Shown one piece after another: positions 22,601 to 57,200 of a DNA stretch of 64,000 nt (position 1 is the first letter of the stretch; the number at the start of each line of letters is the position of its first letter). This DNA comes from Leidyana gryllorum EB-2025a (taxonomy: Eukaryota; Protista; Apicomplexa). Where the stretch lies: assembly GCA_048772705.1 (NCBI GenBank), contig JBLWGC010000194.1, positions 62,001 through 126,000 on the forward strand, in the 5' to 3' direction. The notes below the pieces were generated by a model. That model searched no databases, was not told where the DNA came from, and saw nothing but the letters and a program-made list of their open reading frames with translations. Made by a program: the position numbers and the translations under genes.

Positions 22601-25600
22601 AACCGGAGTAACAGTTGACTCGGAGGCGGTGGTAGTGACACCAGTGGTAACCGGAGTGGCAGTCGACTCGGAGGCGGTGGTAGTGACACCAGTGCTAAGC
22701 GGAGTGGCAGTCGACTCGGAGGCGGTGGTAGTGACACCAGTGCTAAGCGGAGTGGCAGTCGACTCGGAGGCGGTGGTAGTGACACCAGTGGTAACCGGAG
22801 TGGCAGTCGACTCGGAGGCGGTGGTAGTGACACCAGTGCTAAGCGGAGTGGCAGTCGACTCGGAGGCGGTGGTAGTGACACCAGTGCTAAGCGGAGTGGC
22901 AGTCGACTCGGAGGCGGTGGTAGTGACACCAGTGCTAAGCGGAGTGGCAGTCGACTCGGAGGCGGTGGTGGGAGGAGGCGTGTTGGGCGATTGGATCTCG
23001 AGAGTACTTGTTGTTGGTTCCTCGGTCAACACCTGCTCAGTACCCACGGGTGTGACCACAGGCCCTTCTGTACTCGAGGTAATTGACTCGGAGGCGGTGG
23101 TAGTGACACCAGTGGTGACCGGAGTAACAGTGGACTCGGAGGCGCTGGTAGTGACACCAGTGGTAACCGGAGTAACAGTGGACTCGGAAGCGGTGGTAGT
23201 GACACCAGTGCTAAGCGGAGTAACAGTGGACTCGGAGGCGCTGGTAGTGACACCAGTGGTGACCGGAGTAACAGAGGACTCGGAGGCGGTGGTAGTGACA
23301 CCAGTGCTAAGCGGAGTGGCAGTCGACTCGGAGACGCTGGTAGTGACACCAGTGGTGACCGGAGTAACAGTTGACTCGGAGGCGGTGGTAGTGACACCAG
23401 TGGTAACCGGAGTAACAGTGGACTCGGAAGCGGTGGTAGTGACACCAGTGCTAAGCGGAGTAACAGTGGACTCGGAGGCGCTGGTAGTGACACCAGTGGT
23501 GACCGGAGTAACAGAGGACTCGGAGGCGGTGGTAGTGACACCAGTGCTAAGCGGAGTGGCAGTCGACTCGGAGACGCTGGTAGTGACACCAGTGGTGACC
23601 GGAGTAACAGAGGACTCGGAGGCGCTGGTAGTGACACCAGTGGTAACCGGAGTAACAGAGGACTCGGAGGCGGTGGTAGTGACACCAGTGCTAAGCGGAG
23701 TGGCAGTCGACTCGGAGACGCTGGTAGTGACACCAGTGGTGACCGGAGTAACAGTTGACTCGGAGGCGGTGGTAGTGACACCAGTGGTAAGCGGAGTAGC
23801 AGTCGACTCGGAGGCGGTGGTAGTGACACCAGTGCTAAGCGGAGTGGCAGTCGACTCGGAGGCGGTGGTAGTGACACCAGTGGTAACCGGAGTAACAGTC
23901 GACTCGGAGGCGGTGGTAGTGACACCAGTGCTAAGCGGAGTGGCAGTCGACTCGGAGGCGGTGGTGGGAAGAGGCGTGTTGGGCGATTGGATCTCGAGAG
24001 TACTTGTTGTTGGTTCCTCGGTCAACACCTGCTCAGTACCCACGGGTGTGACCACTGGTCCTTCTGTAATCGAAGTAATTGACTCGGAGGCGGTGGTAGT
24101 GACACCAGTGCTAAGCGGAGTGGCAGTCGACTCGGAGGCGGTGGTAGTGACACCAGTGGTAACCGGAGTAACAGTGGACTCGGAAGCGGTGGTAGTGACA
24201 CCAGTGCTAAGCGGAGTGGCAGTCGACTCGGAGGCGGTGGTAGTGACACCAGTGGTAACCGGAGTAACAGTGGACTTGGAAGCGGTGGTAGTGACACCAG
24301 TGCTAAGCGGAGTGGCAGTCGACTCGGAGGCGGTGGTAGTGACACCAGTGGTAACCGGAGTAACAGTGGACTCGGAGGCGGTGGTAGTGACACCAGTGGT
24401 AACCGGAGTAACAGTGGACTCGGAAGCGGTGGTAGTGACACCAGTGCTAAGCGGAGTAACAGTGGACTCGGAGGCGCTGGTAGTGACACCAGTGGTGACC
24501 GGAGTAACAGAGGACTCGGAGGCGGTGGTGGGAGGAGGCGTGTTGGGCGATTGGATCTCGAGAGTACTTGTTGTTGGTTCCTCGGTCAACACCTGCTCAG
24601 TACCCACGGGTGTGACCACAGGCCCTTCTGTACTCGAGGTAATTGACTCGGAGACGCTGGTAGTGACACCAGTGGTGACCGGAGTAACAGAGGACTCGGA
24701 GGCGGTGGTGGGAGGAGGCGTGTTGGGCGATTGGATCTCGAGAGTACTTGTTGTTGGTTCCTCGGTGGCGATAAGCTCCGTGCTGATGGGAGAGAGAGTG
24801 TCCGTTTGAGTGAGTGTGACCGTTGCACTCGACTCCAACGCAGACGAGAGATCGGTTTTTGAGACGAAAGTTGATTCTGCTGAAGTAGTCAAGATTGAGG
24901 TGACGCTTGACCTTGATGTGGTAGGGGTAGCTATCGGGCTTGTGGCAGGCGGCTGTGTTTCCTCACTGCTGGTTGTTGCAGTGGTTGACTTTTCCGGCTC
25001 CGTTCCTGTGGTTTCGACAGCAGTTGTCAGTTCATCTGTCGAAGTGAGTTCAGATTCTGTACTTGGGGAGGAAACTTCAGGGGTACTTGAGATCTCTATC
25101 TGGGTAGTACCCATTTCTGTAGAGAAGGGAGTAGTTTCAACAGTGGTGACTGTTGCGGTGGGAATGGAAGACATGGTAATAGTTCGAGTGTCCAAGAGTT
25201 CGGTAGTGTCCGATGCGGTCTCACTACTTGTGATTGTCTCAACGGTAGTGAGAGTACTTGAGGTTTCCAGTGTAGTCCATGACTGCGTAAGTTCTTCCGT
25301 CGACTCACTGGTCGAAGAATGAGTGTCCACCTCGGTAGAAGTATCTCTCGGCACTTCAGTAGCACTAGTTTCCTCGACAGTAGTGTCAAGGAGGATCGTG
25401 GTGCTGGATTCCTCCGTGAGGTCCGATGAGGGGGTGGTGTCCAGAAGTATTGTGGTCGAAGACTCCTCAGTACTGTCCAGTTCTATCGTGGTGTGTGTTT
25501 CTTCAGAAGTTGAATCAAGCTCAAGTCCAGTAGTGCTCTCCGGTTCGGAGCATTCTGGATGGCAGCCTTCTGGACACTCGCACTCTTCCTCACAATCTGG

Positions 25601-26600
25601 AAGAGGCTCGTTGTCGGAGCACTCGGCTGCCGGGGCGGCAGGCACAGGGGCTATATTACGAGGTAAGAACAACTCGACTGTTTCGGGTTCATCATACGAG
25701 ATAGTGAGCTCGTCCTCCGTGAAAGCTCTTGGACGCTGTGTCGGTCCACCTGTTATGACCTTTTCTTTAGGCTCGCTCAAGAGTTTGCAGAGCGATTGTA
25801 CAGGCGAAATAGCCTTATAGCAGGTTTTCGGGCCCGCTACGACATGATCGGACCGCGGTAAGCCTTCGCATGATGCCTTGTCGCCGCAGAGACACTCATA
25901 AGTTTGCGACGACACTGCGGCTGGCTGACTGAGATGGATAGAGCACCGCTGCGGGAAGGAGGAGTCAAAGGACCACGAGACACAGTCTTTCAACTCGGCA
26001 CATTTGTGTTGGCACTCTTCCACAGAGGTGGCAAAACCTTCAGAAGCAACCCCGGAGATATCTACCTTCGCCGATATTTCCGCTCCGACCACTGTGCAAT
26101 CTGCGTTATCGCGAGACACAATACCGCAGTGTGCGGAGAACCACGGCCAATCGGAATCATTGGACTCCAGAGCCAAATAGGCGATACGGCAAGAAGCATC
26201 ATCAGCATCTCCCGCTATGGCGACCACCAAGTGAGCGTCTGCAAAGGGGGTGGGTGGGTGATGGCAACTTGAGTTGGCGGAGCGAAGTCTTACCCTCAAT
26301 GTTTCGGCCGACACCATCGTGCGTACAATAGTGAGCAGGGTCGGCAGCGTAAGCAGTAAGACATTCAGTGACCGAGGTGAATACGACAATGTTAGGAGGG
26401 AGGTGGTGATGAGGAGGCAGAGATTGGCAACGACATTGGCCACTATGCGGGTCGTAGCTTGGATTGTATGTCCAGAGGCGTCGAGTTTCGATCAGATTCC
26501 CCAAAGACAATACCTTGGTAACATTTGAGTACACCACACTGCTAACTTCTGCAAGAATCAGCAGCGGGGCACTGCACAAGAAAAGTATGCTGCTGTACAT
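1..26600 (-). CDS. Giant secreted/surface mucin-like glycoprotein with N-terminal signal peptide, Cys-rich head and PAN/Apple domain (3' end outside window; >8,800 aa)
   Basis: ATG at 26600 gives MYSSILFLCSAPLLILAEVSS (signal-peptide-like). A GTAAG...TTGCAG intron at 26239-26293 joins ...NIE to DAHLVVAIAG of the 2872-aa ORF. Thr/Ser/Glu/Pro repeats follow down to position 1, with no in-frame stop seen in 1-~8940. Several frame breaks occur between ~8940 and ~18360. Confidence 0.88.
1922..6520 (-). repeat. Mucin repeat block C: 93-bp (31-aa) units TTTASESTASGTEVESTTSTAEIQPPVTTTP mixed with 48-bp STTASESTGTSTATAV units and higher-order repeats
   Basis: Directly visible; grades into block B around 5950-8450. 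Confidence 0.9.
6520..19230 (-). repeat. Mucin repeat block B: 48-bp units TTTASESTGTSIATGV with spacer AVSSTEEPIVTPVGTEQVVTEETTTSTVEIQPPVTTTP
   Basis: Near-identical 48-bp units (plus strand gtgacaccagtagcgatcgaagtgccagtggactcagaggcagtggta). This block contains all the frame-disrupting indels. Confidence 0.95.
19560..24770 (-). repeat. Mucin repeat block A: 48-bp (16-aa) units TTTASEST(V/A)TP(V/L)(T/S)TGV, interspersed with a longer spacer ITSITEGPVVTPVGTEQVLTEEPTTSTLEIQSPNTP
   Basis: Directly visible coding tandem repeat with an intact frame. Confidence 0.95.
25820..26100 (-). other. PAN/Apple domain within the mucin head
   Basis: C...SVEECQHKCAELKDCVSWSF...RC...VVAGPKTC matches the Apple CxxxC-x5-C-x2-W/F-x-F and terminal GPKxC pattern of apicomplexan microneme adhesins (MIC4-type). 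Confidence 0.75.
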
Positions 26601-28375: not shown

Positions 28376-30606
28376 ATGTCGTCGGCAAAGCCACCTGCCA
28401 AGCCACCTCCCCCCTTGAAGGTCAACCCGACAACTCCCGCTTCCAAACTTCTCCACAACAAGAATATTCCCAAAGCCCCAATCAAGTCCCCAAGCGAGAT
28501 TTCAAGGTCCGGAGCCCCTTCTGCCTCCAACGACCTCGCAGCCAGCGCTGCCAGTATAGATATCAGAAGTACTTTCAGTACGGATGATAAGCAACCTATG
28601 GGCTCACAGTTGTTACATTCATCAAACTCTCCACTGCTCAATAACCGGTCATCCTCCCAGGTTGAAATATTCCCATCACGTAGCAATTTGGACCTCCCAC
28701 CTCCGTCACCACTGATTTCGCCCAGCGATCTGGAAGAGAGTAGCAGCTCAGACTCCTCAACTTCGAAAGCACCGACACCAGCCATACCTCCGGTGCTACG
28801 AGAGATATTGGGAACTTTGATTATTCCACCCGTAGAAAGGCCGCGATGCACGTCCCTGCAGTGTTCCACTACGAATTGCTGCGGGAATCTACCACTCGAC
28901 AGCTCTCGGAAGACGACTCCTCTGTGCTGTGCACCAGCTGACGGTCCTACGCGACGCGCTGGAGGATACTCGTCATGTCTGCGAGATCCGCGTCTCCGAA
29001 CCACCGCTAGCTCATGTCTACAGACGTTGGGTCCAGCCGTTGACAAGATGCAGGATGCACTTCCCAAGCTGGAGCATCTTTTGGGAGTGAACGTGGCCAA
29101 AGTGCGAAGTCTTCGACACACTGGAGGAACCATTGTCCAACATGTTCACGATCTGTTGGCGGAGATTCTGGGATATCATCCGCCTCCTGAGTGGGTGCAA
29201 CAGATCAGTCAGCTGCTGTCAACAACAGCGCTTGCCCCCGCCTCCGAGGGTGCGGTTCCGGCAGAGGTTGGGGGGGCAGCTGAAGGAGACCGGCGGTATT
29301 CGACCAGGCGACTTTTGGCCACGCCGCCTCCATCACAGGGACCAGAAGGCACAAAGACTACAACAGGGTTGGCATTGTTGCGTCAATCATCCAGACAGCT
29401 CAAGAAGGATTTGAGTCGTTTGGGTTCGAGTGACAAACCTCCCGAGCCTCCAGCCCCGAGCCGCAGTTCTCTGGCAATTCCCGAAGAGGAGTCCCCGGCA
29501 GTCATCATTGAAGGACTGCGGACGCAACTGCGGGAAACCGAAGAGTATGCGGATAAGTTGAATGAGTATTGGACCACCAAGAATGAGAAGATCGTTCAGA
29601 GTTTCAATGAGACGATGGAGAATTTGCAGGCGAGATTCGCTGCGGAGTCCAAAGCTCAGACATTGGCTGCTGATGCTAAGCTACGGCAGGAGCTGGAAAA
29701 GCTGCAGATCTCCGAGGCGGCAGCTCGAGCCGAACTCGAACATCTGAAGGTAAAGTGTTCCAAAGGGCAGGCAGCTACACGACATCTTCCTTGTCATCGC
29801 AGGACAATCTTGAGGCCACCGAAACGAACCTGAAGGGCGAGCAAGGATCACTATCCGAAGCCCGTCGAGTCATCGCAAATATGACCGAACGTTTGAAGAA
29901 GGCAGAAGAGGATAAAGACAAAGCCGAGGAGAAATTGAAGGAAGAGAAAGATCAGCACTTGGCAATGCGAGAGCAGATCGAAGAGACCGTAGACGAAAGT
30001 CAAGCTCAAATCGATCAGTTGCAATCTCAGATCGCGAAATTGCAGGACTCAGCGATCGAAGCAGAGCAGGTGAAGGGCCGATTCCGCAGCGAAATGGCCG
30101 CAGTCAAAGGGATGCTCGACACGCTACAGAGTCGTGTAGAGCAGTTGCGTACAGATTTGAGACACTCCGAAGAGCTTCGGGAGGTTCTGGAGCGGGAGTT
30201 GAGGGATCAACGGGAATTCCTGGAGAGCGCTGAAGCAATGGTGATCGCGGCTGATGCCAAAGTGGCCAAACACGAAGCTGAGGAGAAACGGTGTTTGGAG
30301 AAAGCACAGAAATGTAGAGCCAAAGGTTTGGAGTATCGCAAGTTATGGCATCAGACTCGTGATCGGATCGGAGAAATCGATCTGATAGCTCGAGAAGTGG
30401 AGAGTTGGAGAGGGGATCAAGAGCAACAAATCAAACGGATGGAGCAGGGATGGAACAAAGATCGGGTGTTAATGGTTGAACAAGACGAACAACTCTCAGA
30501 ACTATTCCATCAACTGAGATTCTTCGCGGACTTGGCCGGCAGCTACGCAAAGGAGGTGGAGAATCTGAAAGATACTTTACGAAAAGTGTCAGCACCATTA
30601 TCGTGA
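28376..30606 (+). CDS. Hypothetical protein: Pro/Ser-rich N-terminus and long C-terminal coiled coil (2 exons)
   Basis: The 485-aa and 283-aa ORFs are joined in frame by a GT-AG intron at 29750-29802 (HLK|DNLEATE). The C-terminal half is E/K/Q/R-rich and heptad-like. A further short exon is possible after GTGAGT at 30603. Confidence 0.8.
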
Positions 30607-34218: not shown

Positions 34219-36911
34219 ATGAGCGCCGATAGACGCCGTGCGGCCTTCGCATATCGCTCCGTATTCGACTTCGCGGAGGTGATGGAACATTTCATACAAC
34301 CAAACGTGTTGGGTAAAGAACATGTTGATCGGTTGCTCCGTGCATGTGCTGAGTACCCACTTTCGGGCCTGGAAGATATCTCTGTTGTACCTGATTGGCC
34401 TGAGATCGTTCCAAGTCTCCCGCAAGCTGCCTATCAAGTGCTCCGAGACCTTAACTTCCGCACATGCACTCTGCAACTTGTTCACGAGAGCCTCAGTGGA
34501 CGTGAGTGGTTTATCTCCATAACAGCTTCTCACGTGATATCGGACCCCTAATGTATGCAGGTGGTGACTCCAAGAAGCTGCTTCTACGACTTCAAGACGG
34601 CCTTGAAGTGGAAACCTGCATTATGCGGTATGGCTCTGACGAGGCGTCGGTGAGTCACTGTGATGCATATGTTTAACGTCTTGTGATACGTCTGTTCATT
34701 GTCTACGGTCGCTCCGTTTATCTCTCGGAGACGTCTCATTATTGCTTCTGCGGCGTTTAATTGTTGTGTATCTCAACAGGGGCACCGCAAAGACGAGTCT
34801 GGTCACCTCCACTTCAACAGTCGACGTAGAGCGACAGTTTGTGTTTCATCGCAAGTCGGTTGTCGGATGGGATGCACCTTCTGTGCGACGGGGACGCTGC
34901 AAATGCGCGGTAATCTGACTGGTGGCGAGATTTTGGAACAGATTCTGTTGGCGAATGCGATTGAGCGTCGCGACAGACTCACTGATGATCCGACCGAAGC
35001 GGCGGACCCCTCTGTAAAGAAGTCCATCCGCAATGTTGTCTTTATGGGCATGGGGGAGCCGTTGGACAATTACCGGGAGGTGATGCGTTGCGTAAGGTGA
35101 GCGACGCCGTCGGCCGACCCCAAAGATTATCTGTCTCTCTTTAGGTTGCTGACGAGTTCGCGGATCATTTCCGTTGCGCCGTACCGGGTAACCCTGTCCA
35201 CCGTTGGGTACTCCCCGTCGCGCATCAAAGAGTTGATCAAGGACGCCCCAAAGATCTCGCTGGCACTCTCACTTCACGCACCAACGCAGGAGTTGCGCGA
35301 TCAGATTGTTCCCACCTCCAAAGTGAACAAGTTGGAGTCCATTCTGGAGGCTTGTTATGAGTTTGTGGATCATCAACGCTCGTTGTCCAAATCCAATCAG
35401 AAGCGTCAGAATCTGCTGGTCGAGTATTGTGTGATTTCGAACACGAACGACTCGGACGAGACTGCGCATCAATTGGGTCGACTCCTGGAACCGTACAAGG
35501 AGAAAACGATGTTAAATTTGATTCCATACAATAAAACAGACGTGGGACGCCCGTTAGAGTAAGCGACCGTCCGAAAATGACACCCCCGTCACTCTTCAAT
35601 GACGCAGAACTCCATCACCTCAAAGGGTCACGGCATTCCATCAGATCGTTCGCGGATACGGAATCCCGTCATTTGTTCGACAAGAATTCGGGGCTGTAAG
35701 TTTCTTTAGTGTGACGCATCATCGCTCCGCCTTGGCAGGACATTGATGGAGCGTGCGGCCAATTGGCATCGAAACACTCCATGGACACCGTGTCGGAAGA
35801 CGCCCCCGACATGGGGTGTGTCGGTACGAATGCCTCGATGGTGAGCGATCATGCCCGGTACGAGGACGTACCTACCGACGGCCGCGATACCAATCTGAAT
35901 GACTTCCAATCGGTGGAAGAAGCAGAAGCTGATGAGGAAGACGGAGAAGACGTCGACCGAATCCCCCAACAGATTGGAGAAGGCGCACAGTCAAACCCAA
36001 CCATTCCAGCAGGAGAAGAAGAAGAAGGAGAACAGTGCGTGGACGGGGAAATCGTGGAGGATCAACTCCACGACATCGAACGAGATGGAGCCCTCCCCGT
36101 CGCCAGCGAACTTGACACTCAACAGCACCCCGCAATCGAAGTTCATCAAGTTGTGCTTTCACCCCCAATTCTACAAAAGACCCCCAACACACTCCAGCAA
36201 GAAGAGAACGGTCCCTCATCGGAAACTCTAGCTGAGTCTGAACTCCCGGAGAAAGAGCCACCACTATCAGAACGCTCGTGTCTCTCCGGTAGTGGCCAGC
36301 CTCAGCACTCTCCCGAGGATCATCCAGACGAGTCTGGCCTGCCCACAACGCAACCGCCACCAATCGAAGGCACACACGAAAATTATGCGACCCCTCCAAG
36401 CGTTGATCAAGGTTTCGCCACAACGGAGTATCAACACGAAGGAAGAACAGAAGTTGTGGAAGCGGAAAGTACCGAACAGCAACCCACTGGATCCGATCGC
36501 CCGGCCCCGGATTCCAGCGAGTTTGTCTGTACTGACGATCTTCCGAAAAGAGAATCAGAAAATAATGACAATGACTTGAAGACTGTTGTCAACCAACGAT
36601 GCCCGTCCAAAGATTCTCTTCGGGAATCTATCTCGGACAATAAAGGCGATCATGGGCAAAAACTCGAAGACCGACCCACCTGTCCGCAAGATGAAGCAAA
36701 GAGCGAAAGCAGTGCGAAGGTTGACTCCGCTGCCGATCTGTACCGGTCAATGGACAACTCTGTAGTCGAAATGGCTAGTAAAGCGTCACCTGTTGCTGGC
36801 TCCGCAGCACCTTGGCGGACAGTGGTATGTGTGGCAGTAGGCGGCTGTGCAATTGTAGTCACAACTATTTGCGTTGCACGAGCCTTACGGGCACGACGAG
36901 CACGCTCGTAA
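34219..36911 (+). CDS. rlmN: RlmN/Cfr-family radical-SAM RNA methyltransferase with ~380-aa acidic extension and C-terminal transmembrane anchor (6 exons)
   Basis: KLLLRLQDGLEVETCIM, TVCVSSQVGCRMGCTFCATG (CxxxCxxC), NVVFMGMGEPLDNY, LALSLHAP, LNLIPYN, VRQEFGA|DIDGACGQLA. Introns ~34502-34560, 34650-34779, 35098-35145, 35559-35607, 35696-35738. The frame continues without a stop into ORF 35763-36911. Confidence 0.92.
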
Positions 36912-36964: not shown

Positions 36965-38360
36965 ATGGACTACGAACATGAACCTGATCCTCTATTCGCC
37001 GGGTCTCGACCCACCTTCCAGTCCGTCGCCGATGCCGCCTCAAACGCTCAGACGAGCTCACAGGCTGCTTTGCGCGAGGGACAGGATGAACGAGATGCAC
37101 TCCAGCAGCAGCATTTGGCGGAACACCTTTTAGAGGAAGACCTGGCTGAAGCGGCCGAGCGTGAAGCCGCACGCCGGGAAGAGGAGGAGGAACAGCTCCA
37201 CGCAGCTGAAGAAGCGGGAAACGGCTGGCTGTCGCATACAACAGGCGGCTGGCTCAAATTGAGTCGCCAGTCCAAGAATACTGTTCCCGATGCCCTTCTA
37301 GCGCAGGCCAGGGGCCGCGATCGGTCCAAAGAAGGCGCCAACACATGGCATTCACGCTTGTCCATGGGGGAGCACGGAGCCGCCGCATACTCAGTGCTCG
37401 GCGGATTTCCTCAGGGAACTTCCGAGGCATGGTGAGCCGATACTTGAGCAGTGTGTGATGCAGATATCAGCAATGCGCCCCGTGAGGGTTTGCCTTCAAA
37501 AGTGTCCTTCTGTGACCCGGAGGCTGTTGTCGCTGGTACCGATGAGGACTTGGATCTGGTGATGGAGTCTCTGCAGATCTTCCAAGAGACTGCCCTGCGT
37601 ATTGAGGATTGCCACGAGCTGCGTCCAGATGCAAACTCCGCAAGAACCTCGTACTTCTTCGGAATGGTCATTTGGGGCCCGAACAAACCAGTAGGAGCTT
37701 CATTGAAGACCGCCGTCAACGAAACCTTCGAGCGTTGGCCATTGGGACACTATCAGGACGATTTTACGTACAATCCTTGTGATGATTCGATCCTTGCTGC
37801 CTTTGATCTGTCCAGACCGGGACATTACTACGGCGCTCTCAAAGGTAGGGACAGTGATTTCCGCGATTCTTATTGCCTTCTGTTGATAGTATCGGATTTG
37901 GTCTCTACGAAACTCCCGGAAAGCATTTTGAATGAAATACTTTACGCTTGGGATCACGGTAGGGTCGCTTTCGTCAACTCACAGAGTATTGAATCGATCA
38001 GAATTGAATACTCCCTCTCTGCGTCCATCAGAAGCTGTTGGGATAGCGCTTGGGACACTGCGACAATACCTCACACAAGAAAGTAAGATCCGAGTGCCTG
38101 AATCGATTGCAAAACTCTCTGCAGTTCGAAGTCCGCGACAGCGCAGTCAGCTGATTTTGGTTGTGATAGTCAATTCCCTGGTTCTATTGTTGTTTGCCGT
38201 GATGATGGGGAAAGGAATGAGCTCAGCTACGAAAACTCAGGCTACCGGTCAGAACACGACGAAAGAGAGCGAGCCGCGCGCAAGCGGGCGGAGGAGAGGT
38301 CGCAGACGTCGTCAGACCGAGAGAGAATCGTCTGGAGCTGATTTGATTGAGACTATTTGA
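36965..38360 (+). CDS. MOLO1/TPM-domain-like single-pass membrane protein
   Basis: Introns 37432-37470 and 37959-38001 (and possibly 38083-38124) give FPQGTSEACNAPREGLPSKVSFCDPEAVV...FERWPLGH...CDDSILAAF, resembling MOLO1 motifs (CDP, WxLG, CDDxVL). A C-terminal TM (LILVVIVNSLVLLLFAVMMG) and basic tail follow. The N-terminus is uncertain. Confidence 0.6.
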
Positions 38361-38432
38361 TGGTTAGTTGGCATATGTTTTTAGATTTGATTGAGACTAT
38401 TTGATGGTTAGTTGGCATATGTTTTTAGATTT
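38340..38432 (+). repeat. Perfect 44-bp tandem duplication spanning the stop codon of the upstream gene
   Basis: gatttgattgagactatttgatggttagttggcatatgttttta occurs twice in tandem. Confidence 0.9.
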
Positions 38433-38705: not shown

Positions 38706-40858
38706 TCAGCATATTCCTTCTCCTTCGCGGTAGAAAGTGTATCTTCCATTTTCCAAGTATTCAAAGAAAGCGCGTGACATGTCAAGAATATTCATATTAT
38801 CATCAACATCGTAGATATTTAGAGTTCCGTTACCGCCCCAGGGATTGACCGGGACCCACGGTATAGTGTAAAAGCCATATGCGAAAGTGGCTAATCCTCC
38901 GGCTTGGATGCGCCTTGGTTCGTGGGTATGGCAGCCTCTGGGTCTCGAGTGTACACCGCAAGCCTCCTCAACAGCAACTTGGCTCATGATCTCCTGAATT
39001 TTCAGCAAGTTCAACTCGCCACCGAAGAGCGTCGTTGGGCGTGCCATCGCAGATGTGGGTTCCATCGCCCATCGCATCAAGTGCTTGATATCATATGCAC
39101 GAAGAACGGGAGTCAGACGAATCATATAGGTAGCAACAGCCCCCACGAAGGCCGCTGCATGATTGGTGTTGGTGGATTTGCCATAATGAGTCGCGGAGCG
39201 GAGACTCTCGTCTTCGAAATCCGCCTCAGGAGAGGCAACAGCCATTTTGAACGAAGGATCGGTAGTTGTGAGGATGTCAGCTGCTGGTGCTCCCAGAGTC
39301 ACACAGTTTTCGCCGTAGTTGGAGGTGCTCAAGCGAGCACCTCTTTCAGTGGTTCCAGCGACTGTGATGAAGTTTGGATAGTTCCAGCAGGCCGGGTACA
39401 CATAGCCGGTTCTACTGGTTGGACCCACAGAGCGTCCCTCATTGCCGGCTCTGTGCACCGCAAGGACGCCGGCATCGTGCAACGCACCGTAAGCAGCCTG
39501 AGACACCATGTCTGGTACCTTTACGGTGGACGACCATTCAGAGTGGCTGACAGAATAAGCGAATGAGGCAAAATAAGGTGTGAGAGGGGCTTACAGATGG
39601 ACAGTGACCCTGGCATTGATAGACAGAGCCCAGTCGATGCATTCGGCGATATTGTTGCTGGTGGCAGCTGTTCCCCAACTGCACACCGCCAACTTGACGC
39701 CATTGCGGGTGACGGAGGACACTCCCAATCGATTGGCATTTGTGGCAGCTATAACGCCGGCGCTTTCGGTGCCTTCCCGGCCAGTAGCGTTGGGCTTCTG
39801 TCCGGTTTTGTAACCTGCTGTCCAGCCATAAATGTCGTCAATGTAGCCGTTCTTATCATCATCGACCCCAGGTTTGCCGTTCAACTCAGCTTCATTGACC
39901 CAAATGTTCTGCTGGAGGTCGGGATGCTCGAACCAGATTCCAGGACATATGATGACCATGACAGGGACTTTCGGGAACACGCCGTCCCCATGGCGATAGA
40001 AGAGCCTATACACTTCCCTGCACAACACATAACAAGACCGCTTGACGCTGGAACTCACTTCAGGTGCCACTGCTGATCGAAGTACGGGTCGTTTGAAGCA
40101 CTAAAGCGAGCGGAAGTCTCATCCAGATCGTCGAGCTCCATCTCAGGCTCAGAAGGAGTGTAGCCAAAGTGTTCATTCACCATGTCGTCCATAGACATGA
40201 GTAAGCGTCGTTGACTCTCCCTTGCAACCTCTTCTGGAATCTCTTCGACTTCTCCGTCTTCTTCCTCTGCAACTTCAATCCTCTCGATTTCAAAGTTAGA
40301 TTTCAAGAAGAACACATCATCTTGGAGATCGACAGCGGAACAATCTTCAATCACTCCCCCGTAATCGACTCTAATGATCCGAATGTATTTCATGATCCTA
40401 ACAGTGGGCACACATGCTCTCGATCTCGCAACCCGTCGGGTGTAGTGGCACTCGCCATCGTCTTCAGCCATACAGCTTTGGGCCCAGTGAATTTTCTCTG
40501 CCGATAAGTCCTGGTTTGCAGCCATTCTCAGGTACAAAGTCGGTAGAGCCTTGGGACTGCCGCTTCCCAGCGCGTCTTGTACTCCCCGAGCAAGTTGGTC
40601 ATCGAAAGATAGGGTTCTGCTTCGCGCAAAAGGATAACCACCTCCCGGAGCTGGAACAGCTGTTGCATCGGTTGGGAGGGTTTCATTGAAGTAAGCCGCC
40701 GCGTTGATTGTCTTTTTGTATTTGTTTTGGACAGCAAAGAGACCCAGTGAGTGGTGCTCATTGGTGTACCAAGGCATCATCAGTGGTTGAATTATTCGCA
40801 TCTCAGCCTCACACTGTGGGGCTAAGAGGGAGAAGAGAAGAGTTGTCAAGAGTTTCAT
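38706..40858 (-). CDS. Secreted subtilisin-like (S8) pseudoprotease 1, 3 exons
   Basis: Signal peptide MKLLTTLLFSLLAPQCEA; prodomain; NDPYFDQQWHL; HPDLQQNIWVNEAELNGKPGVDDDKNGYIDDIYGW; RAGN; YPACW. Introns 40018-40058 and 39547-39594. Triad positions read IICPG, REGT, TNTNH. Confidence 0.88.
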
Positions 40859-41189
40859 CGTGCTCGAAGCTTTGATTCGAGATCGGCCGACTTTCTCAAT
40901 TGCGAGCGGAAAGGTGGTCGCACACACATTTGTGTGCGCCTAAGTCTGGCTTTTGGTGTTATTTACATAACGTTCGTTGACTCGACGTGCGCGTTCTTGC
41001 GTTCCGTCAAAGCGTCCATCGCGAAACACTCAAGAGTGGGTGCCTATTTCTCTTGCACAAAGCATGATCGGACGGCCGGTCATTTCTCAGTTGGGAGTGT
41101 TTGAGTAGTACTAGACCACCCTGTAGCGACTAATTTACCTCTGTCACGGCAAGCCTTGCTCAGCAGGTCGCTTTTGTTATCCGCTGATC

Positions 41190-41260
41190 ACAAGCGATAC
41201 TGACTACTTGTCTCGGCGCAAGTGTTCGTTGAGACAAGCGATACTGACTACTTGTCTCGG
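41190..41260. repeat. 27-bp direct repeat (44-bp spacing) with internal hairpin
   Basis: acaagcgatactgactacttgtctcgg at 41190-41216 and 41234-41260; GAGACAAG-N12-CTTGTCTC inverted repeat at 41231-41258. Confidence 0.8.
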
Positions 41261-41594
41261 GCAATTGGTGCGTCACAGTTATAAAGACTGTGAGTGATTG
41301 CTGTTAGAACTGACGGTCGGATTGATATGTTAGTGTTATTGTGCCCAATGTATTTATTACAAACACACGTTGATTCAATGCTTTCAGTTGTTGTTCTAAT
41401 TCAGTCTGAAGATTCATTTTCGTTGGCAAGAGATGGCCTTGTATGGTGCCTTCAATGTCTGGGACAATGAAGGAAGCGAATTAGGTGCCACGAGCGGCAC
41501 AGTCAATGACGATTGCAGTAGTAAAGAGATTAGTGGAGCGAGCCAATGTCTAATGAAAGCGAATTTCCTTTAATTTCGTCGGGGTACAAGTAAA

Positions 41595-43740
41595 TTACTT
41601 CATTGCTCGGCCAGATAATTCTAGGGCCAACTCTTTAAAATCAATGTCGAATAGATCTTGGTCATCATCACAAGCTGTCATTCCCTCATATTGGTAAAAC
41701 TCCCAAGTTTGATTGTAGAAATGATTGAACACCGCTTTAGATCGCCCCAATTCGCGCATCCGATCTCCGTTGACGTGATGGGCGATGAACTCGCCTTCGA
41801 GTTCTTCGATTTCACCCTCGATGGCTGCAGTAACGAAATAGTAGTTGGTCGATTGGCCGGGCCCCAGCAGTCTTGGGGTGATGTGCTCATAGGTCAAGCC
41901 CCCAAAGGCCCGGTTGAGCAGGGCGACGAGGTTCTCAGGTTCCATGTAGCGCCACACTTCGATGCCTTCCGGCCATCCACCATATTGGGTTTGGCTGGCG
42001 CCAGGCTTACTACGCGCGGCATGTCGGAAGATTGCGTCGAGGTCGTAAGCGTTGACGTATGGCTTGTATTGCATGATATTTAGGGCCCACCCCGCCAGCA
42101 TGGCTGCGCCGTACCGATGGTCGCTCTTAGTTGTATATTCGTCCCACTGGCCCGCGAAGTAACGGTGAGCAATGGTTGTGATCCCAGCCCCAGGACCCAT
42201 AGTCTTGATGGCAGGGCCCGTGTCAGCATTATTCACCCGAGCGCCGTTCTGGTCGTAAGTGCCCACAACGAAGTGATTGGGGTACTTCCAGCATGCCGGA
42301 TAAGAATAGGCGGTACCACTGCAGGTGACCACCTTGTTCTTGTTGTCTGCCGGCATGAAGATCGGCTTCCCCATCTCCGCCCACCGATCAAAGGCGGCCT
42401 TGTGATCCGCACTGATCGTCTGCGGCGTGGTGGAGGACCAAGCGTTGCTGAGAAGAAACAATGGATGAAGAATTACGCACAAACACCTCCTTACTCGTAT
42501 ACGATGACATTAGCTCCCACTTTTTCCAGGAACTCGAAGCACTCCCGATCATAGGCGTCGCTCGTCTTGTTTGTGATGTCGTGATACCGTTGGCAATGGA
42601 CCACGTCGACATTGTAGCCGACCATACCAGCGATGCCGATCCCGTTGTTCCATAGAGCCCCGAGAATTCCTGACAGTTCAGCGCCGAGCGGAGACACCCC
42701 ATATGGCTGTTGACCGACCATACCAGCGGTCCATCCGTACATGTCATCGATATATCCATTTCCATCATCGTCGACTCCTGGCATGCCGTAGTGCTCCGCA
42801 TAGTTGACCCAGTGGTTGCCAACAGGCGGTTCCCGGCTGTGGGTGGCCCAGTCCATCATATCGTCATGGGGAAGATCAGTTCCAGTGCTGATTATACCGA
42901 CGCGGGGTGTGAAGTGCGGGCCGTAGTTCCGAACCATATATTGGAAGTGCCACAAGTTGCTGTCGAAGAGAAATCATACATTTGAGTGTGAGCTAATGAA
43001 TAACCTCACCCGTGGTCCATATACCACTGCGATCCTCTCAGTGGATCGTTGGGCCACTGTAGCACGCGACTCTGTGAGACTGCTGTTGGGTCCTGCAGCA
43101 GCCGTTCCATGAGCAGATTGGCTTGACCATTTCTCGCGTTGTCCACCCTGATGCTGGTTATGGGCAGCACCGTTGATATGTACTCGAGGTCAGCTTGAAT
43201 GTCTTCGCGACGGCAATGGACAAAGTTGTTAGCATAGTCGAGAAGAATCAATCTCAGACTTGTGGTCGTGATGACTTCCGGGCGACATTGCGAGCCTTCC
43301 TCCCACTCGCCAAACCCACAATCCTCAGCGTGCATGTACAAGCATCTTCTGACCTCCCCGATCTTCTCCGAAAAATCCTCGTCGAACTCCGGCCGGGCGT
43401 AGCGCAGAAGCAGTCCTTTGCCCTTTCCTAGATGCTCCTTCGTTGGGTTGTAGAGTTCACCAACCATTTCGGCCGCCTGGGAACGTAATGCGGGCTTTTC
43501 CAATGGAAGGCGGACTGCGGTATTCAACCATTTCTCTCTGGTTGACGACGGCTTAATTGTGCGGTTGTAACTTATAGTAAGATTCGCGAACTCTGTTCCG
43601 ACATTCCGGATCTTCAGCAAGACTAGTTTCACCCCCTCCGCATAAGTCGGCATTTGTACCAGAGGAGCCATAGTCATCTTGAATGGAGATTCTGCCAGAC
43701 ATCCCACGGCAGCTATAATTGTAGTGGCTAACCACTTCAT
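41595..43740 (-). CDS. Secreted subtilisin-like (S8) pseudoprotease 2, 3 exons
   Basis: Signal peptide MKWLATTIIAAVGCLA; PNDPLRGSQWYM; GVDDDGNGYIDDMYGW; NNGIGIAGM; PADN; YPACW. Introns 42960-43009 and 42448-42494 sit at approximately the same positions as in paralog 1. Triad positions read IISTG, PLGA, SDHRY. Confidence 0.88.
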
Positions 43741-44688: not shown

Positions 44689-46208
44689 TCACGGCTGAGC
44701 TTCAACCGTACATTGGAAAGAACGCAACGTCTCGGGTGTATAGCGACGATACTCTGCAACAGCGCGTGACTGTGTCTCAGTGTGAATTCCTCCCTCCTCA
44801 CCACGAGTACCGTAGCCCACATTGCAGAGCTTAGCTGATTCAACTAATGCGGGGAACTCGGCTGGATCGACTTCCTGAAAGACATCAAATTCTCAGTCGC
44901 AGTAAGCAATCGGGGCTGTCACACTCACCTTGTTCTGGAACCCCTGACCCAAGATAATGGGGGGCTGCTGTTGTCCATTCCACTCGCCCCGCATCGGTCG
45001 TCTGTTTCCTCCGCGAGCATTGCGAGGACGCCCTCGGCCACGGGCCCCCTCAACAGAACCCCGAGCATCCGACCAATTGCGTGTGTTGTTTGGATATCGT
45101 CGTTGACCGCGTGGCATAAAGGAGCGGCCTCCTCTACCCGAAGCCTTCCTCTGCCTCTCCATGCCCGCCATGTTGTTCATCATGTTTGGTACAAAAGCAC
45201 CTTCAACGTTATATGAGTGATTCGGACGAGTCATGAAAGACTGGAAGGCGCTTTCGGACTTCATTCCCACCTTCAGGCTTGCTCCCTGCAAACACAACCG
45301 ATTAGATACGATCAGCTCACATGAGTGGCCACAGACAACCAGCAGGTAGAGACACCGAGACACGGAAACGCACACCCGCACACCCGGTGTTATCACGCAA
45401 GAGACGTGTAGTGCAGCGCGTACCTTATACTCCTGGGTGCGCAGCCAGAGAGCGGTCTCAGTGGCCTCTTGAGCACTGGGGAGAGTGACGAACCAGGTGT
45501 GGGTTGGACCAACGACCTCTTCTCTCACTTCCAAGATGGCTGATTCGCCGGCCTCTGCTAGACATGGCGCAGAGGCGACGAATGCCTTGAGTTCCGCGGC
45601 CTCGGCTTCGAGGTCACGCAGAATAATTGTACTGCGAGGCGCTTTCATCACAGGATAAAGAATCCCTGCCTGCTCGTCAACACGCAGTAAATGAGCTCCC
45701 ACAGCCTTGGCAGACTCGATCAAAACTTCTTTATTGACCGGTAGCGCGGCAATCGCAGGGTGTCTGAGTAGCGCCTCCACATTGAGGCTGACCTCCTGGG
45801 GAGCGCAATTCGCTACTCCGCCTTCGCCAGCCGCGCTCGGCCAGAGGGCGCCCGTCAGCAGCAAGGCGATGGAAGGATCAACAGAGATATTTTGACGAGA
45901 GAGGAGCTTGCGGAGCTGCGAAAGGAGAAAACGGTGTCAGTGGTACGGACAGTCAGAGGGCGCGGGTTTTTGATCCCGCGGCTGGTGATGGTACTTACCC
46001 GTGAGGTGAGTTCGGTCCTGAGCTCTTCGGGGGAAAGGTCCAAGCCCTCAGAAGGCTCGGGCTGCAACGCACCAAAGTGTATGGGAAAGGAAGACGGAGT
46101 GGCGGGGGAGGCCGGCACGGCCGTGACGGCGGCCGATGGGGAATCGGTCGCCTTGCTGGGAGACTCTATGCTGGGCGTTTCGCCCTCCCGGACCATAGGT
46201 GTGGCCAT
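44689..46208 (-). CDS. La-related RNA-binding protein (LARP4-like: La motif + RRM, RG-rich tail)
   Basis: TSR|LRKLLSRQNISVDP (La motif), RSTIILRDL...TWFVTLPSAQEATETALWLR...|GASLKVGMKSE (LARP4-type RRM), RGRGR region, EFPAL. Introns 45916-45998, 45286-45423, 44875-44928. Stop at 44689. Confidence 0.7.
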
Positions 46209-51258: not shown

Positions 51259-54200
51259 TCAACTCGGAATGAAAGCTAATGAGTGCAGATGCTCTATAGT
51301 TGTCCGGGTGGTGTCCAGCACCGCCGTGATAGGGTTCTCTGGCTCGTTTTGAAAGCTGGTGTTATGCATAGCCTCGAGAACACCGAAGAGCGCCCTCTGG
51401 AGTCCCATCCGCTGGTCAGCACTGACAGCATTTGCCATCTCTTGGCTCAGTGCGTAGGACACTCCCCCAGCGACTGCAGTCAGATATCCTGCCAAAGTGT
51501 CAATCATCACTGTCATGGCAAAGCACGCGCTCAAGACCACCTGATGAGAGGAAAGCGATGATAGACAGACAAAGTCAGTGAATAATGAGCTGTCCGTACC
51601 TCTTGCCACTTCTCTTTGAAAGGGTCATCTCGATGGGAAGGTCGACACTTCAGTAAGGTGGCGAGATGTTCAGCATTTATAAGGATGCTGGCTATGAGGT
51701 CAGGAATGCGTTGATTGCGACAGTTTCTCACAAAGCCATCCCGTGTGACAGTGATACTCATTTTCTAGCTTTTTTTGTTTCTTAGATAGAAGGTATGTGA
51801 GTCAACAATTGCGGCTCCAATTCTGCAACAATCCCTTTTGTGTCACTCACTTTTGTTGTACACTTACTCAGACATCTCAGGATAATTATCGTCAGTTGTT
51901 GCCGCGATAATTCAGTATCATCCAAACAATCGTTCCGAACATCCAGCCCAGAATCCAACCACTGTGTCGGGACGGCAATATTGAAGTCGGGGCCGTGAGC
52001 AGCCATCGCGCGATACTGTTCATTGCGAACGGACGTCACGAGCTTCAGCAGAGCGGAGAGTCTATCAAAGATCTCAGACCCCTGCACCCGAGGACGGTGC
52101 ACAATCCGATCCGCTTGATAGTCTTCAGGCCCAAGCAACACGGACAACAGTTTATGTACCACCAAAACGTACCAGCCAGCAGCGTCAAGAAGTGTACGCA
52201 GAGCTGCTGTCTCAGCTTTAGATGGACCACTCGGAGACATTGACACCGTTTTTGCTGCCACCTTGGTCTTGAGCAGGGATGGCTGCCCCTTTCGAATCTT
52301 GGGCAGCTCACTCTCCTCATGAGCGATGGCCTCTTCCAATGCCTCTTCCACTGCTTTCCACTGAGACGCTTCCCGCAAGGCATCCCCGCCGACCACCATC
52401 ACCGGTTCATTCTCGGCGCGCTTGTCCTCGGGTCTCATAGCTCGCTCCTGTTTGCTTCCTTGACCATTGTTGAAGTGTGCCAATGTCTCCTGAAGGAGTC
52501 TCCATGCGGAGATCTCCAAAACCCACAGCCATTCGGACTGACACGTCGCATATACGAGCTGCTTGTGGAAGGAGCTCATAGGGGCGTCTTCAAGCACTGT
52601 CTGGAAGTCCAGCTTGACGGGAAGAGGGCCATCGTGGAGAGTGATATATAAAGACCGGAACACAACTTGAACGGACCGCAGTTTATCCTCAGCAACCAGT
52701 ATAACAGAAGCATTGGGCTTCATCTCAACTGGTGACGAGAACTCGCTCCACACGAACTGATGCTCAATAGTTTGGCGGCCAACAATCCAGCCGTCAATTC
52801 CGCAGCATCGGAGAAGCAGCATGTGGCATCGGAACGCCAACAGTTTGGCTTTGAGCAGATCGGCGGGTCTGATCCTTTCAGTGAGCTCCAATACCCTTAC
52901 GACCGTCCGCAAATTGGTGGTGAGACTCGTTCTCAAAAGATGAATCTCATCATCTTTGAGCAGGAATTGGGTACTCAACACACCATTCACCAGAGACAAC
53001 GCACACATGAGACGACTCCGTCTCAAATTGCCCCAGCGACCAAACACTGTTCCATCCGTTGACTGGAGATCTTTCAATATATTCTCCGCCCACGTGAACA
53101 ATTTCACCGCTGTGGCCGGGGCCCGCTTCCCTTCAAGTGCCTGCAACATTTGGGTCTGAGAGAAACAATGAGAGCGTTAGTGAAATTGAGGCGGTGAACA
53201 AACTGACCTGTAATGGCGAGTTGAAGGCCGGAAGGTCCCAAATCGCCACGTCCAGAGCCTCTGTGGTCGAGTCCCACGCTTTGAGGCTTCGCTTCACCAG
53301 ATACCGGTCGTACTCTGTCGCGGTATACATCAAACAATCGAGAGTCGCCGACAGTCTCTCAGCATGGCGCAGTGACGAGGCAGCGGCACCAGCGCTGGTG
53401 AAGTCCGAATTGCACATCAAGAAGTCGCTGCTGTGACGAGCCAGACGTCCAGCGTCGCATGCCAAGGCACATATGGCCACGACATGAGTCCGTGACAGAG
53501 GCAGCTCGCCATTCTCCTCGTCTTCCGAGTCGTTCTTTAACACACTCATACTCCGTTGCAGCATCAGCTGGATCAGGTCACACCATAAGAGTGCCCATCC
53601 AATTGCCAAATTTGCCCTGAGCAGTCCTTCGCGAGTGACTGGAACGTCTTGACCTAAAATCTCCCGCATCTTAACATCTATTGGGGCCACAAACTCGTCG
53701 CAGAACTTTCCCAGCTGAGTCATCGGGTCCTACAGGCGGCAAAGAGAGGTGTGCGACGGGGAAATGAGAAAAGAGGTTCGCTCACCTGGATGAGCGATTG
53801 GCGTATAGACTCGAGCACAATTTTGGCAGCGGCTATGTACAAAGCAAAAGCCGACTCTTGAAAGTCGTAGATAATGTCTGGAGCTCTTGTGGCTGCCGTC
53901 AAGGACATTGTTTCCAGACATCGTTCGACAGCTACCAGAAACTTTGGTAAGCCACCAGGCGCTGGTGTAGCGAAACTTCTGGCCAGTTTGATAGCGGTGG
54001 CTTGAGATGCTTTCACACGGGCGTCCGCGAATAGAGCCCATCTCTTCGTTCGATCCTTTTTGGATGCCAAGCACAAACCACACTCGAAGTCATCGTTCAG
54101 ATCCACGAGTTTGGCGGAGAATTCCGCTTGCAGCAGTTGGCATTGAGATGCGTACCAGTCGAGCAAACACCTGTGCACAGCGTCCGAGTCGGCAGGACTC

Positions 54201-57200
54201 AGCTCCATCGTGATGACTTCACTGATGTCCGTGTTTCTCCTGGGAGCAATGGCAACGAGAATGGGCCGAATAGCCGGCCGCTTGTAGAGGGCTGCCAGAC
54301 ACTCGGCGGCGTAAATGCTCTCCTCGATGATTGGTGTGAGATAGGCGGCAAACTCGGCGTCGCCAGAGGGTCCGCTGGCCAGCCCAATGGGGATTGACAG
54401 CGCATTAGCGGCAGCCAAGGCCGCTGAGTTTTTAACTTTGGCCAATGACTCTGTGCGCAATTCCAGTACTTTGATACTTGCCAACCCAAAGAGCGTTCTA
54501 AGGACTCTTATGCACGGTGGCGCATCGTCCCAATTGTTCTCAACAGCTGAGAAGGATCTGCCAGCCGCCACATGCGAGACGTCCCTCAGTATTATACTCT
54601 GGCGATTGGTCACCATCCCTAACAGCACTTCACCGGGTGATATCTCCTGAACCTTTGGGGGATACAGTTGTGCCCGCAGTGCCCGCGGCTGGAGCGAGTT
54701 GGCCAAAAAGTCAAGGATCTGGCGACGAGGGGCACGCCGGTTGGGATCATCTCTCGCTACACACGGGGGCTTGTCTGTCAAGGCCGGCGTATGACGGGTC
54801 ACATGGGGACATTTCTGAAATTAAAAGAAAGAGTGATCTCCACAGAGTCTTTCTAAGAAAGACTTACCAAACGACTGGCTTCTTCCTGCCAGACATAGGA
54901 GGCTGAAACGGTAGTTGATGGGGGCATAGTCTTGGGTGGGACATCAAAGTGGGTAACCACTGTCTCTTCGAAAGCCCCGTGTAGAGAAATCGGAGTGAGA
55001 GCATTCAGCTGGAAGAGACGCCATAGTGCCGGTCCCTGAGTTTTCGGGGGGCGCCGAGCGGCTGATTCTTCCCACCTGCTGCGTGTGCTCGGGTCCAGAA
55101 CATCACAAGGCATCGACACCTTTGGCAACCAGCCACTGCTGCGCAACATATCCGGATCTTCGACCACTTGTGCCGCCTCGTCAGAGAGCCATTTGGCGAA
55201 TAGCCGCTGCACTGACTCACAGACGTCCTGGTGATCCTGTAGAGCGCGAGACACGTCATCTCCACACTTGGCCGAAACCACACAAAAGATGGGTAGTAAT
55301 GCAGTTCGGGCTAACGCCGTCTCGGTGTGGGCGGCCATCTGATCGACCAACAGAACGATCAGCGGATCGACGTCGTCGGGCTCCACACTCCAGGTGAAAT
55401 CATCACCTCTCCGACACAACGCCACCGAGACGCCTCTGGCTGTCACCGCTGGCAGTCCCGGCAGCACGTCCACATAGATGCGGTCGACCGACGACCCCAC
55501 TCGAGATCTGTCTCGGTCCCTCCGTTCCCTCGGGAGCTCTGCCCACATTTGTGCAAAGACATCTTCGCGGAACAACAGGTGATACAAAGTACAGACAGCG
55601 GATTCGAAAGTTGACTTGATCACTCGGGTCTCCCAACTCTCCATACGAACGTCACCTCTGAGCAGCCGGCAGGCTCTCCTGAGGGAGACATAGAGAACTT
55701 GGAACCACGGCGATGTATCCGACAACAAATGAGACGCGAGATAGACTTGAGCCTCTTTCCAATTGGGTATCTCGTTCACGTCGGCAGTCAGTACCGTCGT
55801 GGCAAAATCACAGAGGAGAGACGCGAGCCTCCAGCAGGAGAGACTGTATAATTGTGGTGTACACAGCCAAATCAGCACTTCTCCTTCGATGAATCGGAAA
55901 AGCTGTTGCCAGCCGGGGATCATAGCTGAAGGAGCCCTCGGGAAGGGCGCTCGGACGCTCATTAACTCAAAAAGGGCGTGCGACTGCTCCGCAGCCAACA
56001 CGAGGCGACGGAAGCAGTGCAGTGTTGCACACAGGTAATCGGATCTGAGAGTGCGTGCAGACACTGCGCCCAAAGCCTGAGTGTGCTCAGATATGATGTA
56101 TACATCCAGACGTAGGTGAGCCAATCTTTGGAGGAACTGACGGACCACTGCGTCCCCACAACCGTCGGTCATAAATGTTGCCATCACAGACAATGCGGCC
56201 ACCTTTAAGCCGCTCAAACCCCGAACCCAACGTGCTCGCGTCTCAGTGTCTGCGTCAGACAGTCCACATTCTATGCCGAGCTTTTGTGAAAGCGCAGAGG
56301 AATCGGTGCCGAGGATGTTAAGAGCCATTGTACGAGTCTCGTTATTCGAGACCCAACACTCGTCGCCCACTTCGGCGGCCGGTGTCGTTGGGTCTGACAG
56401 CGGAGACACCAGGGCCGCCGCTGCCAGACACCGGAGGTATCCATCCCAGACAGAGACGGCGTAGGACGGATCTGCCCGACCGTTCATACTGAGGGCTTTC
56501 GCCAAATCACCCACCCCGGCGTCAGCGAATACCACCGAGCGACTGATGTGTTCATGGGGCAACTGGCTCAAGGGGCCTTCAACGTTTAGAAAGCGACTGG
56601 CCAATGTCAGCAACTCCTCTTCGCCCAGGAAGTACATAGTGGACGCTGTGAGATGGGCGATCGCAGCACAGGACGTCAGTCTCCTGATGCTGTTCTCCGC
56701 GGCGGGAAATTGGCTTGCGTTTGTGGGAACAGTTGGCATAAGGAGCTGTTGGGTAAGCGGAGCCACTCTCGAGAGGATTGAATGTGTGGTGGGGGCGGGA
56801 CCGGGCGGCGGCACTGCTCCTTCCTTGTAGGGCCATTGGCCCATCAAGAGAAGGATCAAATCCATCATGACCGGAGCGAGAGACGGCAGTCGACGTATGA
56901 GGGCATCGAACATCATCAGGGCTGGGGCCAGCACGGGACGTCGAACAGACTCGCCAGAGTATACCATCGCCTTCACCAAGCGCGCGTTGGCTTTGAGTCG
57001 TTCTTCGTCGGCTGTTCCATCAGACTCCAGGGCGGTGAGTCCTCGCAAAGCTCCGGTTGCACCAATATAGAAAGGACGGAAAGACCGAGCGTAGACTTGG
57101 AGAATGAGATTGTCGAGCGGTTCGAGAGGATCGCCGCGTTGCAAAAAGGTCTCCATTAAAAGGGGTAAGACATCCCACTTGCTGAGTCCGCAGGTGAAGA

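Follow-up and report, generated by a model that had tools for sequence, protein, structure and literature searches.

Two neighbouring subtilisin-like genes of the apicomplexan Leidyana gryllorum have lost the whole catalytic triad and are probably maintained as non-peptidase homologues

Can a secreted subtilisin lose every residue of its catalytic triad and still be retained as a gene? The question is raised by two neighbouring genes, here called A and B, in a 64,000-nucleotide (nt) stretch of the Leidyana gryllorum EB-2025a genome (Apicomplexa; GenBank assembly GCA_048772705.1, contig JBLWGC010000194.1, positions 62,001 to 126,000 of the forward strand). We call this whole stretch the window, and coordinates are window positions unless a contig is named. 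The two genes lie co-oriented on the minus strand within 38706-43740, as read from the sequence and checked numerically; gene A is paralog 2 and gene B paralog 1 of a first-pass annotation made from the sequence without database searches. With a probability of about 0.72, we conclude that A and B belong to a lineage-specific subfamily of SUB1-like S8 proteases with three exons and that selection has maintained them as catalytically dead members, or non-peptidase homologues. Searches, alignments, trees and fold predictions were all carried out exon by exon.

The catalytic residues were read from exon-wise MAFFT alignments and from hidden Markov models built from active paralogues alone, the reference being 9-10 paralogues in the same genome that carry Asp, His and Ser and have an identical gene structure. 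The two methods agreed. At the Asp32 motif, which is VIDSG in the active paralogues, B reads IICPG (Asp32 to Cys) and A reads IISTG (Asp32 to Ser). At the His64 motif (GHGTH), B reads REGTE, with both His64 and His67 changed to Glu, and A reads PLGAE (His64 to Leu). At the Ser221 motif (GTSMA), B reads NTNHA (Ser221 to Asn) and A reads DHRYG (Ser221 to Arg); the adjoining residue 222, Met in the active paralogues, is His in B and Tyr in A. The oxyanion Asn155 is kept in both genes (SAGN in the active paralogues, RAGN in B, PADN in A). These replacements are exactly those that the first-pass annotation had proposed, residue by residue, and the oxyanion Asn and YPACW motif that it had listed as retained are confirmed in the family alignment.

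The register at Ser221 is supported in B because, in an AlphaFold2 model of exon 3, helix F starts at Thr127-Asn128, the equivalent of Thr220-Ser221. For A, a phmmer local alignment of exon 3 with subtilisin BPN' is off by 3 in register and places Thr at Ser221; Ser is found there in neither register. The changes extend beyond the triad. In A and B, further altered active-site or cleft residues include G63, H67, M222 and the segment equivalent to SLG, and the altered cleft segments comprise the stretch after the conserved exon 2 Cys and the exon 2/3 junction (equivalent to Ser125-Gly127). A also has an 11-residue insertion after the Asp motif. The alignments support the view that neither product would be able to use the classical Asp-His-Ser mechanism.

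The assignment to S8 was checked against Pfam and against solved structures, and it held for both genes. Exon 3 of B matches Pfam PF00082 with 36.2 bits (cut-off 21.8), and exon 2 of B scores 18.5 bits. Exon 3 of A scores 16.7 bits, under the 21.8 cut-off, and exon 2 of A has no Pfam match, so that no exon of gene A by itself reaches a Pfam cut-off. Gene A can be aligned with its paralogues over the whole length, and its exon 3 matches subtilisin BPN' at E 3.5e-5. Among PDB chains, Plasmodium SUB1 gave the top matches to B exon 2 (E 1e-16), while A exon 2 matched deseasin MCP-01 first with SUB1 just behind (E about 1e-11). The model of B exon 3, built from an 11-sequence family alignment, has a mean predicted local distance difference test (pLDDT) score of 70, rising to 75-92 over the S8 region. 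Its structural matches are to the C-terminal halves of MCP-01, PfSUB1 and PvSUB1, with E about 1e-9 (best E 6e-10 over ~180-200 columns, query-normalised template modelling (TM) score 0.49). In a whole-genome Pfam scan for S8, the one locus detected in the window was gene B (C194:101063-101941, 57.9 bits).

Both genes have the build of intact coding genes. Each of the four introns runs from a GTRAG donor through a pyrimidine tract to a YAG acceptor and lies in phase 2; intron 2 falls in the identical alignment column in A and B, and intron 1 is offset by at most 2 codons. The coding frames hold no stop, whereas the two alternative frames contain 2-18 in each exon. The predicted products are pre-pro-proteins of ~685 residues, each with a signal peptide, a disulfide-bonded prodomain, a SUB1-like S8 domain and a C-terminal domain. 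By eye, the candidate signal peptides of the two genes are MKLLTTLLFSLLAPQCEA and MKWLATTIIAAVGCLA. The SUB1-type Ca-binding loop, GVDDDxNGYIDDxYGW, lies between the Asp and His motifs as GVDDDKNGYIDDIYGW in B and GVDDDGNGYIDDMYGW in A, each identical to the family consensus at 14/16 positions, and the core disulfide Cys and YPACW are kept in both.

The prodomain is called from the family alignment and a medium-confidence model. In the exon 1 family alignment, four Cys are invariant over 10 sequences that share 21-30% identity. In the AlphaFold2 model of B exon 1, residues 85-196 form a beta-alpha-beta-beta-alpha-beta arrangement (pLDDT 70-92), for which the PfSUB1 prodomain (4lvn_P) was the second match in PDB, a weak one (E 0.056, target-normalised TM-score 0.51) among ferredoxin-like folds. 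Exon 1 had no match in Pfam, and the exon 1 profile had none among PDB sequences. The acidic linker between prodomain and protease domain is ~25 residues longer in B than in its paralogues. The intact reading frames, equivalent intron positions, signal peptides (again on a by-eye judgement), prodomains (on the support of the family alignment and the model) and Ca2+-binding loop of SUB1 type that the earlier annotation had ascribed to both genes were all recovered.

The reading frames can be set against a neutral expectation. The non-synonymous divergence of A and B exceeds that of the active pairs by 0.2-0.35 per site. Neutral accrual of that excess predicts 16-25 new stops per gene, and the probability of finding none is below 1e-7. 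Because the frames are open, structural features are kept and the stops expected under neutrality are absent, A and B appear to code for proteins that are retained for a purpose other than classical catalysis.

We also placed the two genes among the other S8 loci of the genome, an assembly of 15.5 Mb in 237 contigs with roughly 20 S8 loci by the Pfam scan. The subfamily to which A and B belong counts 11-12 genes sharing a three-exon structure, an exon 1 that encodes N-terminal strands and a prodomain, and a C-terminal domain (Table 1). No other member of it was found to lack the triad, and all other S8 loci found by the Pfam scan retain Asp, His and Ser. A genome-wide search returned no further A-like or B-like gene. 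In most members of the array on C35, the C-terminus is hydrophobic, glycosylphosphatidylinositol- or transmembrane-like, and is preceded by a Thr/Pro-rich stalk, while A, B and C115 have neither stalk nor anchor; the first array member carries a long TTTPATxP repeat. One divergent paralogue (C121:35580-37660) has an intact triad on a long branch, an oxyanion Asn changed to Asp (PAGDDG), GSS in place of GTS and a 7-residue loop deletion after the His motif, and is possibly a weakened or specialised protease.

Table 1. Positions and contents of genes A and B, with the other members of their subfamily
Feature	Position	Strand	Description
Gene A	43740-41595	minus	3 exons, 682 codons; ATG 43740, stop 41597-41595; secreted triad-less S8 homologue
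Gene A exon 1	43740-43010	minus	signal peptide, N-terminal strands, prodomain with 4 conserved Cys
Gene A intron 1	43009-42960	minus	50 nt, GTGAGG...ACAG, phase 2
Gene A exon 2	42959-42495	minus	N-terminal half of S8 domain: IISTG, Ca-loop GVDDDGNGYIDDMYGW, SPLGAE
Gene A intron 2	42494-42448	minus	47 nt, GTAAGG...CTCAG, phase 2
Gene A exon 3	42447-41598	minus	C-terminal half of S8 domain (PADN, YPACW, SDHRYGAA) and divergent C-terminal domain
Gene B	40858-38706	minus	3 exons, 687 codons; ATG 40858, stop 38708-38706; secreted triad-less S8 homologue
Gene B exon 1	40858-40059	minus	signal peptide, N-terminal strands, ferredoxin-like prodomain (model), long acidic linker
Gene B intron 1	40058-40018	minus	41 nt, GTGAGT...TGCAG, phase 2
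Gene B exon 2	40017-39595	minus	IICPG, Ca-loop GVDDDKNGYIDDIYGW, GREGTE
Gene B intron 2	39594-39547	minus	48 nt, GTAAGC...GTCAG, phase 2
Gene B exon 3	39546-38709	minus	RAGN, YPACW, KSTNTNHAAA, then C-terminal beta domain
Other subfamily members	C35 (274000-293000)		seven-gene tandem array
	C115		1-2 genes
	C121		1 gene

Whether A and B are each other's closest relatives was addressed with trees of the three exons. The exon 3 tree groups them with support of 81/73, under a long-branch warning; the exon 1 and exon 2 trees are polytomies with no support for the grouping, and an approximately unbiased (AU) test does not reject monophyly of A and B (p 0.21). Unique residues common to the pair number 13, 4 and 11, barely above the counts for other pairs. 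In exon 3, B is 37-41% identical to the C35 array and 26-29% identical to A. Loss of the triad once in a shared ancestor and loss twice independently are both compatible with the trees. Of the earlier description of the pair as diverged duplicates, it therefore stands that both are old, diverged S8 homologues; their duplication from one another is not settled by the exon 3 support alone and an AU p of 0.21.

Relatives were also sought beyond this genome. A profile of A and B exon 3, run against 1.84 billion protein cluster representatives, which include proteins predicted from metagenome assemblies, retrieved neither A and B themselves nor any orthologue or paralogue; the best score was 72.6 bits, and the top matches were generic bacterial S8 peptidases. 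A word search with B exon 3 gave no match, but it reaches only proteins of up to 488 residues and is hence uninformative. The pseudoprotease "family" suggested by the first-pass annotation is better described as a pair within an otherwise active subfamily, as no third copy was found in the genome and no orthologue among the representatives.

If A and B are dead subtilases, how might they work? We propose that both enter the secretory pathway, where each would fold with the help of its own prodomain. Autoprocessing would not follow: since no nucleophile, base or Asp is present to cut the prodomain off, it would stay on, and each pro-protein would remain one chain whose prodomain sits on the pseudo-active cleft, unless A or B is cleaved in trans by an active paralogue. 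Because they end without the Thr-rich stalk and the hydrophobic C-terminus seen in C35 members, both would be soluble, Ca-stabilised proteins of S8 fold, acting through binding and not through cutting. The most plausible role, by analogy with the way CspC and CspA act on CspB, would be that of partners or modulators of active surface subtilases or of their substrates. A bolder version is quite unlikely but can be formulated: A and B might be a eukaryotic counterpart of the Csp system, a soluble, prodomain-locked pair, possibly a heterodimer, which would sense a host-gut cue or ligand at remodelled pseudo-active sites (Cys, Glu, Asn and His in B) and switch on the surface-anchored SUB1-like array, or else B might have acquired a new Cys-His or metal centre.

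Regulation of active subtilases was already among the roles suggested by the first-pass annotation. Its other suggestions for a dead subtilase were decoys for host protease inhibitors (here taken as serine-protease inhibitors of the gut) and structural or adhesive wall components. A secreted, soluble and stable Ca-bound S8 fold would suit such tasks, and fast evolution could fit a host-parasite conflict. What weakens the decoy idea is that no dead subtilase can remove its own prodomain, so that the cleft would stay occupied: judging from subtilase maturation and from the Csp pseudoproteases (PMC7200643), an uncleaved prodomain would block the very cleft that inhibitors bind. The cleft segments are not conserved either. 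As for a place in the wall, no adhesive or repeat domains were seen in A or B by Pfam or in the family alignment, and a stalk or anchor is likewise missing. We consider both suggestions, taken together, unlikely.

Decay is the more radical alternative, in which A and B would be non-functional pseudogenes and the loss of the triad a part of that process. Their divergence is indeed high. Terminal branches of A and B measure 1.63 and 3.03 in exon 2, compared with a median of 0.26, and 4.8 and 10 in exon 3, compared with 0.79, making them 6-12x longer than those of the active paralogues; dN in pairs involving A or B is 1.5-2x that of active pairs. Columns of exon 3 that are invariant in the active paralogues are kept at 44% in B and 35% in A. 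There are, then, signs of relaxed or changed constraint, and a pseudogene would also account for the score of gene A under the Pfam threshold and for the want of orthologues among the 1.84 billion representatives.

The genome does hold a decaying copy with which A and B can be compared. Member 5 of the C35 array (C35, about 285000-287300) carries a frameshift between GAPGTRIY and CTGSVEHH in exon 3, and its exon 1 is interrupted by two TGA codons, yet Asp, His and Ser are all still present; judged by its sequence, it is a real young pseudogene. Its pattern, triad intact and frame broken, is the opposite of that in A and B, whose six exons are free of frameshifts and of stops where neutral divergence would predict at least 16 stops, whose four introns all have intact splice sites, and in which the signal peptides, the four prodomain Cys, the core Cys and the Ca-loops are retained. 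Room is left just for a death so recent that fewer than about 0.02 substitutions per site have accumulated since, and we regard decay as very unlikely. The earlier view of the pair as old, diverged and intact genes, not recent pseudogenes, agrees with the saturated synonymous divergence (below), the long branches, the absence of stops and the preserved Cys, Ca-loops and splice sites.

A re-tooled enzyme, in which Cys, Glu, Asn and His at positions 32, 64, 221 and 222 of B would form a Cys-His type catalytic or metal site, draws on chemically reactive residues at all four positions and on the oxyanion Asn retained in both genes, but we rate it as remote, given that A has Ser, Leu, Arg and Tyr at the same positions and so no common solution, that a different residue at each site in A and B looks like drift at released positions, and that the segments forming the cleft have diverged too.

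Several points weigh against maintenance as non-peptidase homologues. First, in Nei-Gojobori (NG86) comparisons pS, the proportion of synonymous differences, is about 0.75 in all pairs of paralogues, active-active pairs included. Synonymous sites are thus saturated, so that all duplicates are old and dN/dS is not measurable among them, and the search of the representatives gave no orthologue from which it could be taken. Second, the retention of 35-44% of invariant exon 3 columns is as low as in an unrelated S8 subfamily, and by this measure the constraint on A and B is weak outside the core. Third, the fold model of B covers the exon 3 half alone of an S8 domain that spans exons 2 and 3. Fourth, the whole-genome Pfam scan detected no active S8 gene in the window. 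Lastly, the binding or regulatory role is argued by analogy alone.

Known systems resemble A and B in part. Plasmodium SUB1 (PfSUB1/PvSUB1; PDB 4lvn, 4tr2, 8coy, 8pol) is among the solved proteins closest in sequence to exon 2 of A and of B and among the nearest folds to the B exon 3 model, and it has the same Ca-binding loop and the predicted secretory route in common with them, as well as a ferredoxin-like prodomain if the exon 1 model of B is right. It differs in having an intact triad, in autoprocessing and in being an essential egress protease, whereas A and B lack all three catalytic residues and have extra N- and C-terminal domains found in their own subfamily only.

The best-studied precedent is found in Clostridioides difficile, in which the pseudoproteases CspC and CspA control the active CspB (PMC7200643, PMC6636752, PMC12880746). 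CspC and CspA have in common with A and B the S8 fold, a disrupted triad, a retained prodomain and adjacent genes, and they work beside an active paralogue. They are, however, intracellular spore proteins of a bacterium with a demonstrated function, whereas the role of A and B is argued from likeness and no active subtilase gene adjoins them; no Csp chain was among the PDB matches of the A and B exons at E 0.01 or better.

Precedents for protease relatives without catalysis exist in apicomplexans as well. PfSUB1-ProM and stand-alone subtilisin prodomain inhibitors represent a non-catalytic derivative of the SUB1 family that regulates subtilases (PMC6993865), but ProM is a prodomain alone, and A and B keep the whole protease fold. 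SERA5 of Plasmodium is a secreted papain-like pseudoprotease with a substituted nucleophile, non-catalytic in a pathway controlled by a subtilase (PMC5500368); it differs in its clan CA fold and in having one catalytic residue changed.

A further precedent for action through binding is PCSK9, a secreted S8 protein that works by binding alone, its active site being permanently occupied by the prodomain. Unlike A and B, it keeps its triad and cleaves itself once, and it is of kexin and not SUB1 type.

Dead S8 homologues are therefore already known from CspA and CspC, but no such case has so far been reported from this lineage for this protease family, and a literature search found no publication linking gregarines with subtilisin pseudoenzymes. 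In apicomplexans, subtilases of the SUB1 type govern egress and invasion, and they serve as drug targets. A basal apicomplexan relative with an expanded subfamily and two dead members that appear to be long maintained offers a natural system in which to study the SUB1 scaffold and prodomain without catalysis and the regulation of subtilase cascades. As a pseudoenzyme case, the pair is solid but unsurprising, and its importance would depend on the demonstration of a regulatory or sensing role. For annotation, A and B should be named non-peptidase homologues and not proteases; annotation based on Pfam would miss gene A.

The surroundings of the two genes have features of their own. Between A and B, the spacer (41190-41260) contains a perfect 27-nt direct repeat with a spacing of 44 nt, and a perfect 44-nt tandem duplication lies at 38340-38427, ~280 nt downstream of the gene B stop. 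Six long open reading frames around A and B (28376-29830, 35763-36908, 44896-45864, 51785-58608) had no Pfam match at E 0.001 or better. Positions 1-26443 are occupied by a giant repeat-built gene with about 400 copies of a 48-nt (16-residue) unit and variants of 81, 93 and 231 nt. It has an open frame of 2872 residues on the minus strand (17825-26443) and a GC skew of +0.3 over 24 kb. Its predicted product is rich in Thr, Ser, Gly and Val and looks like a mucin-like giant surface protein.

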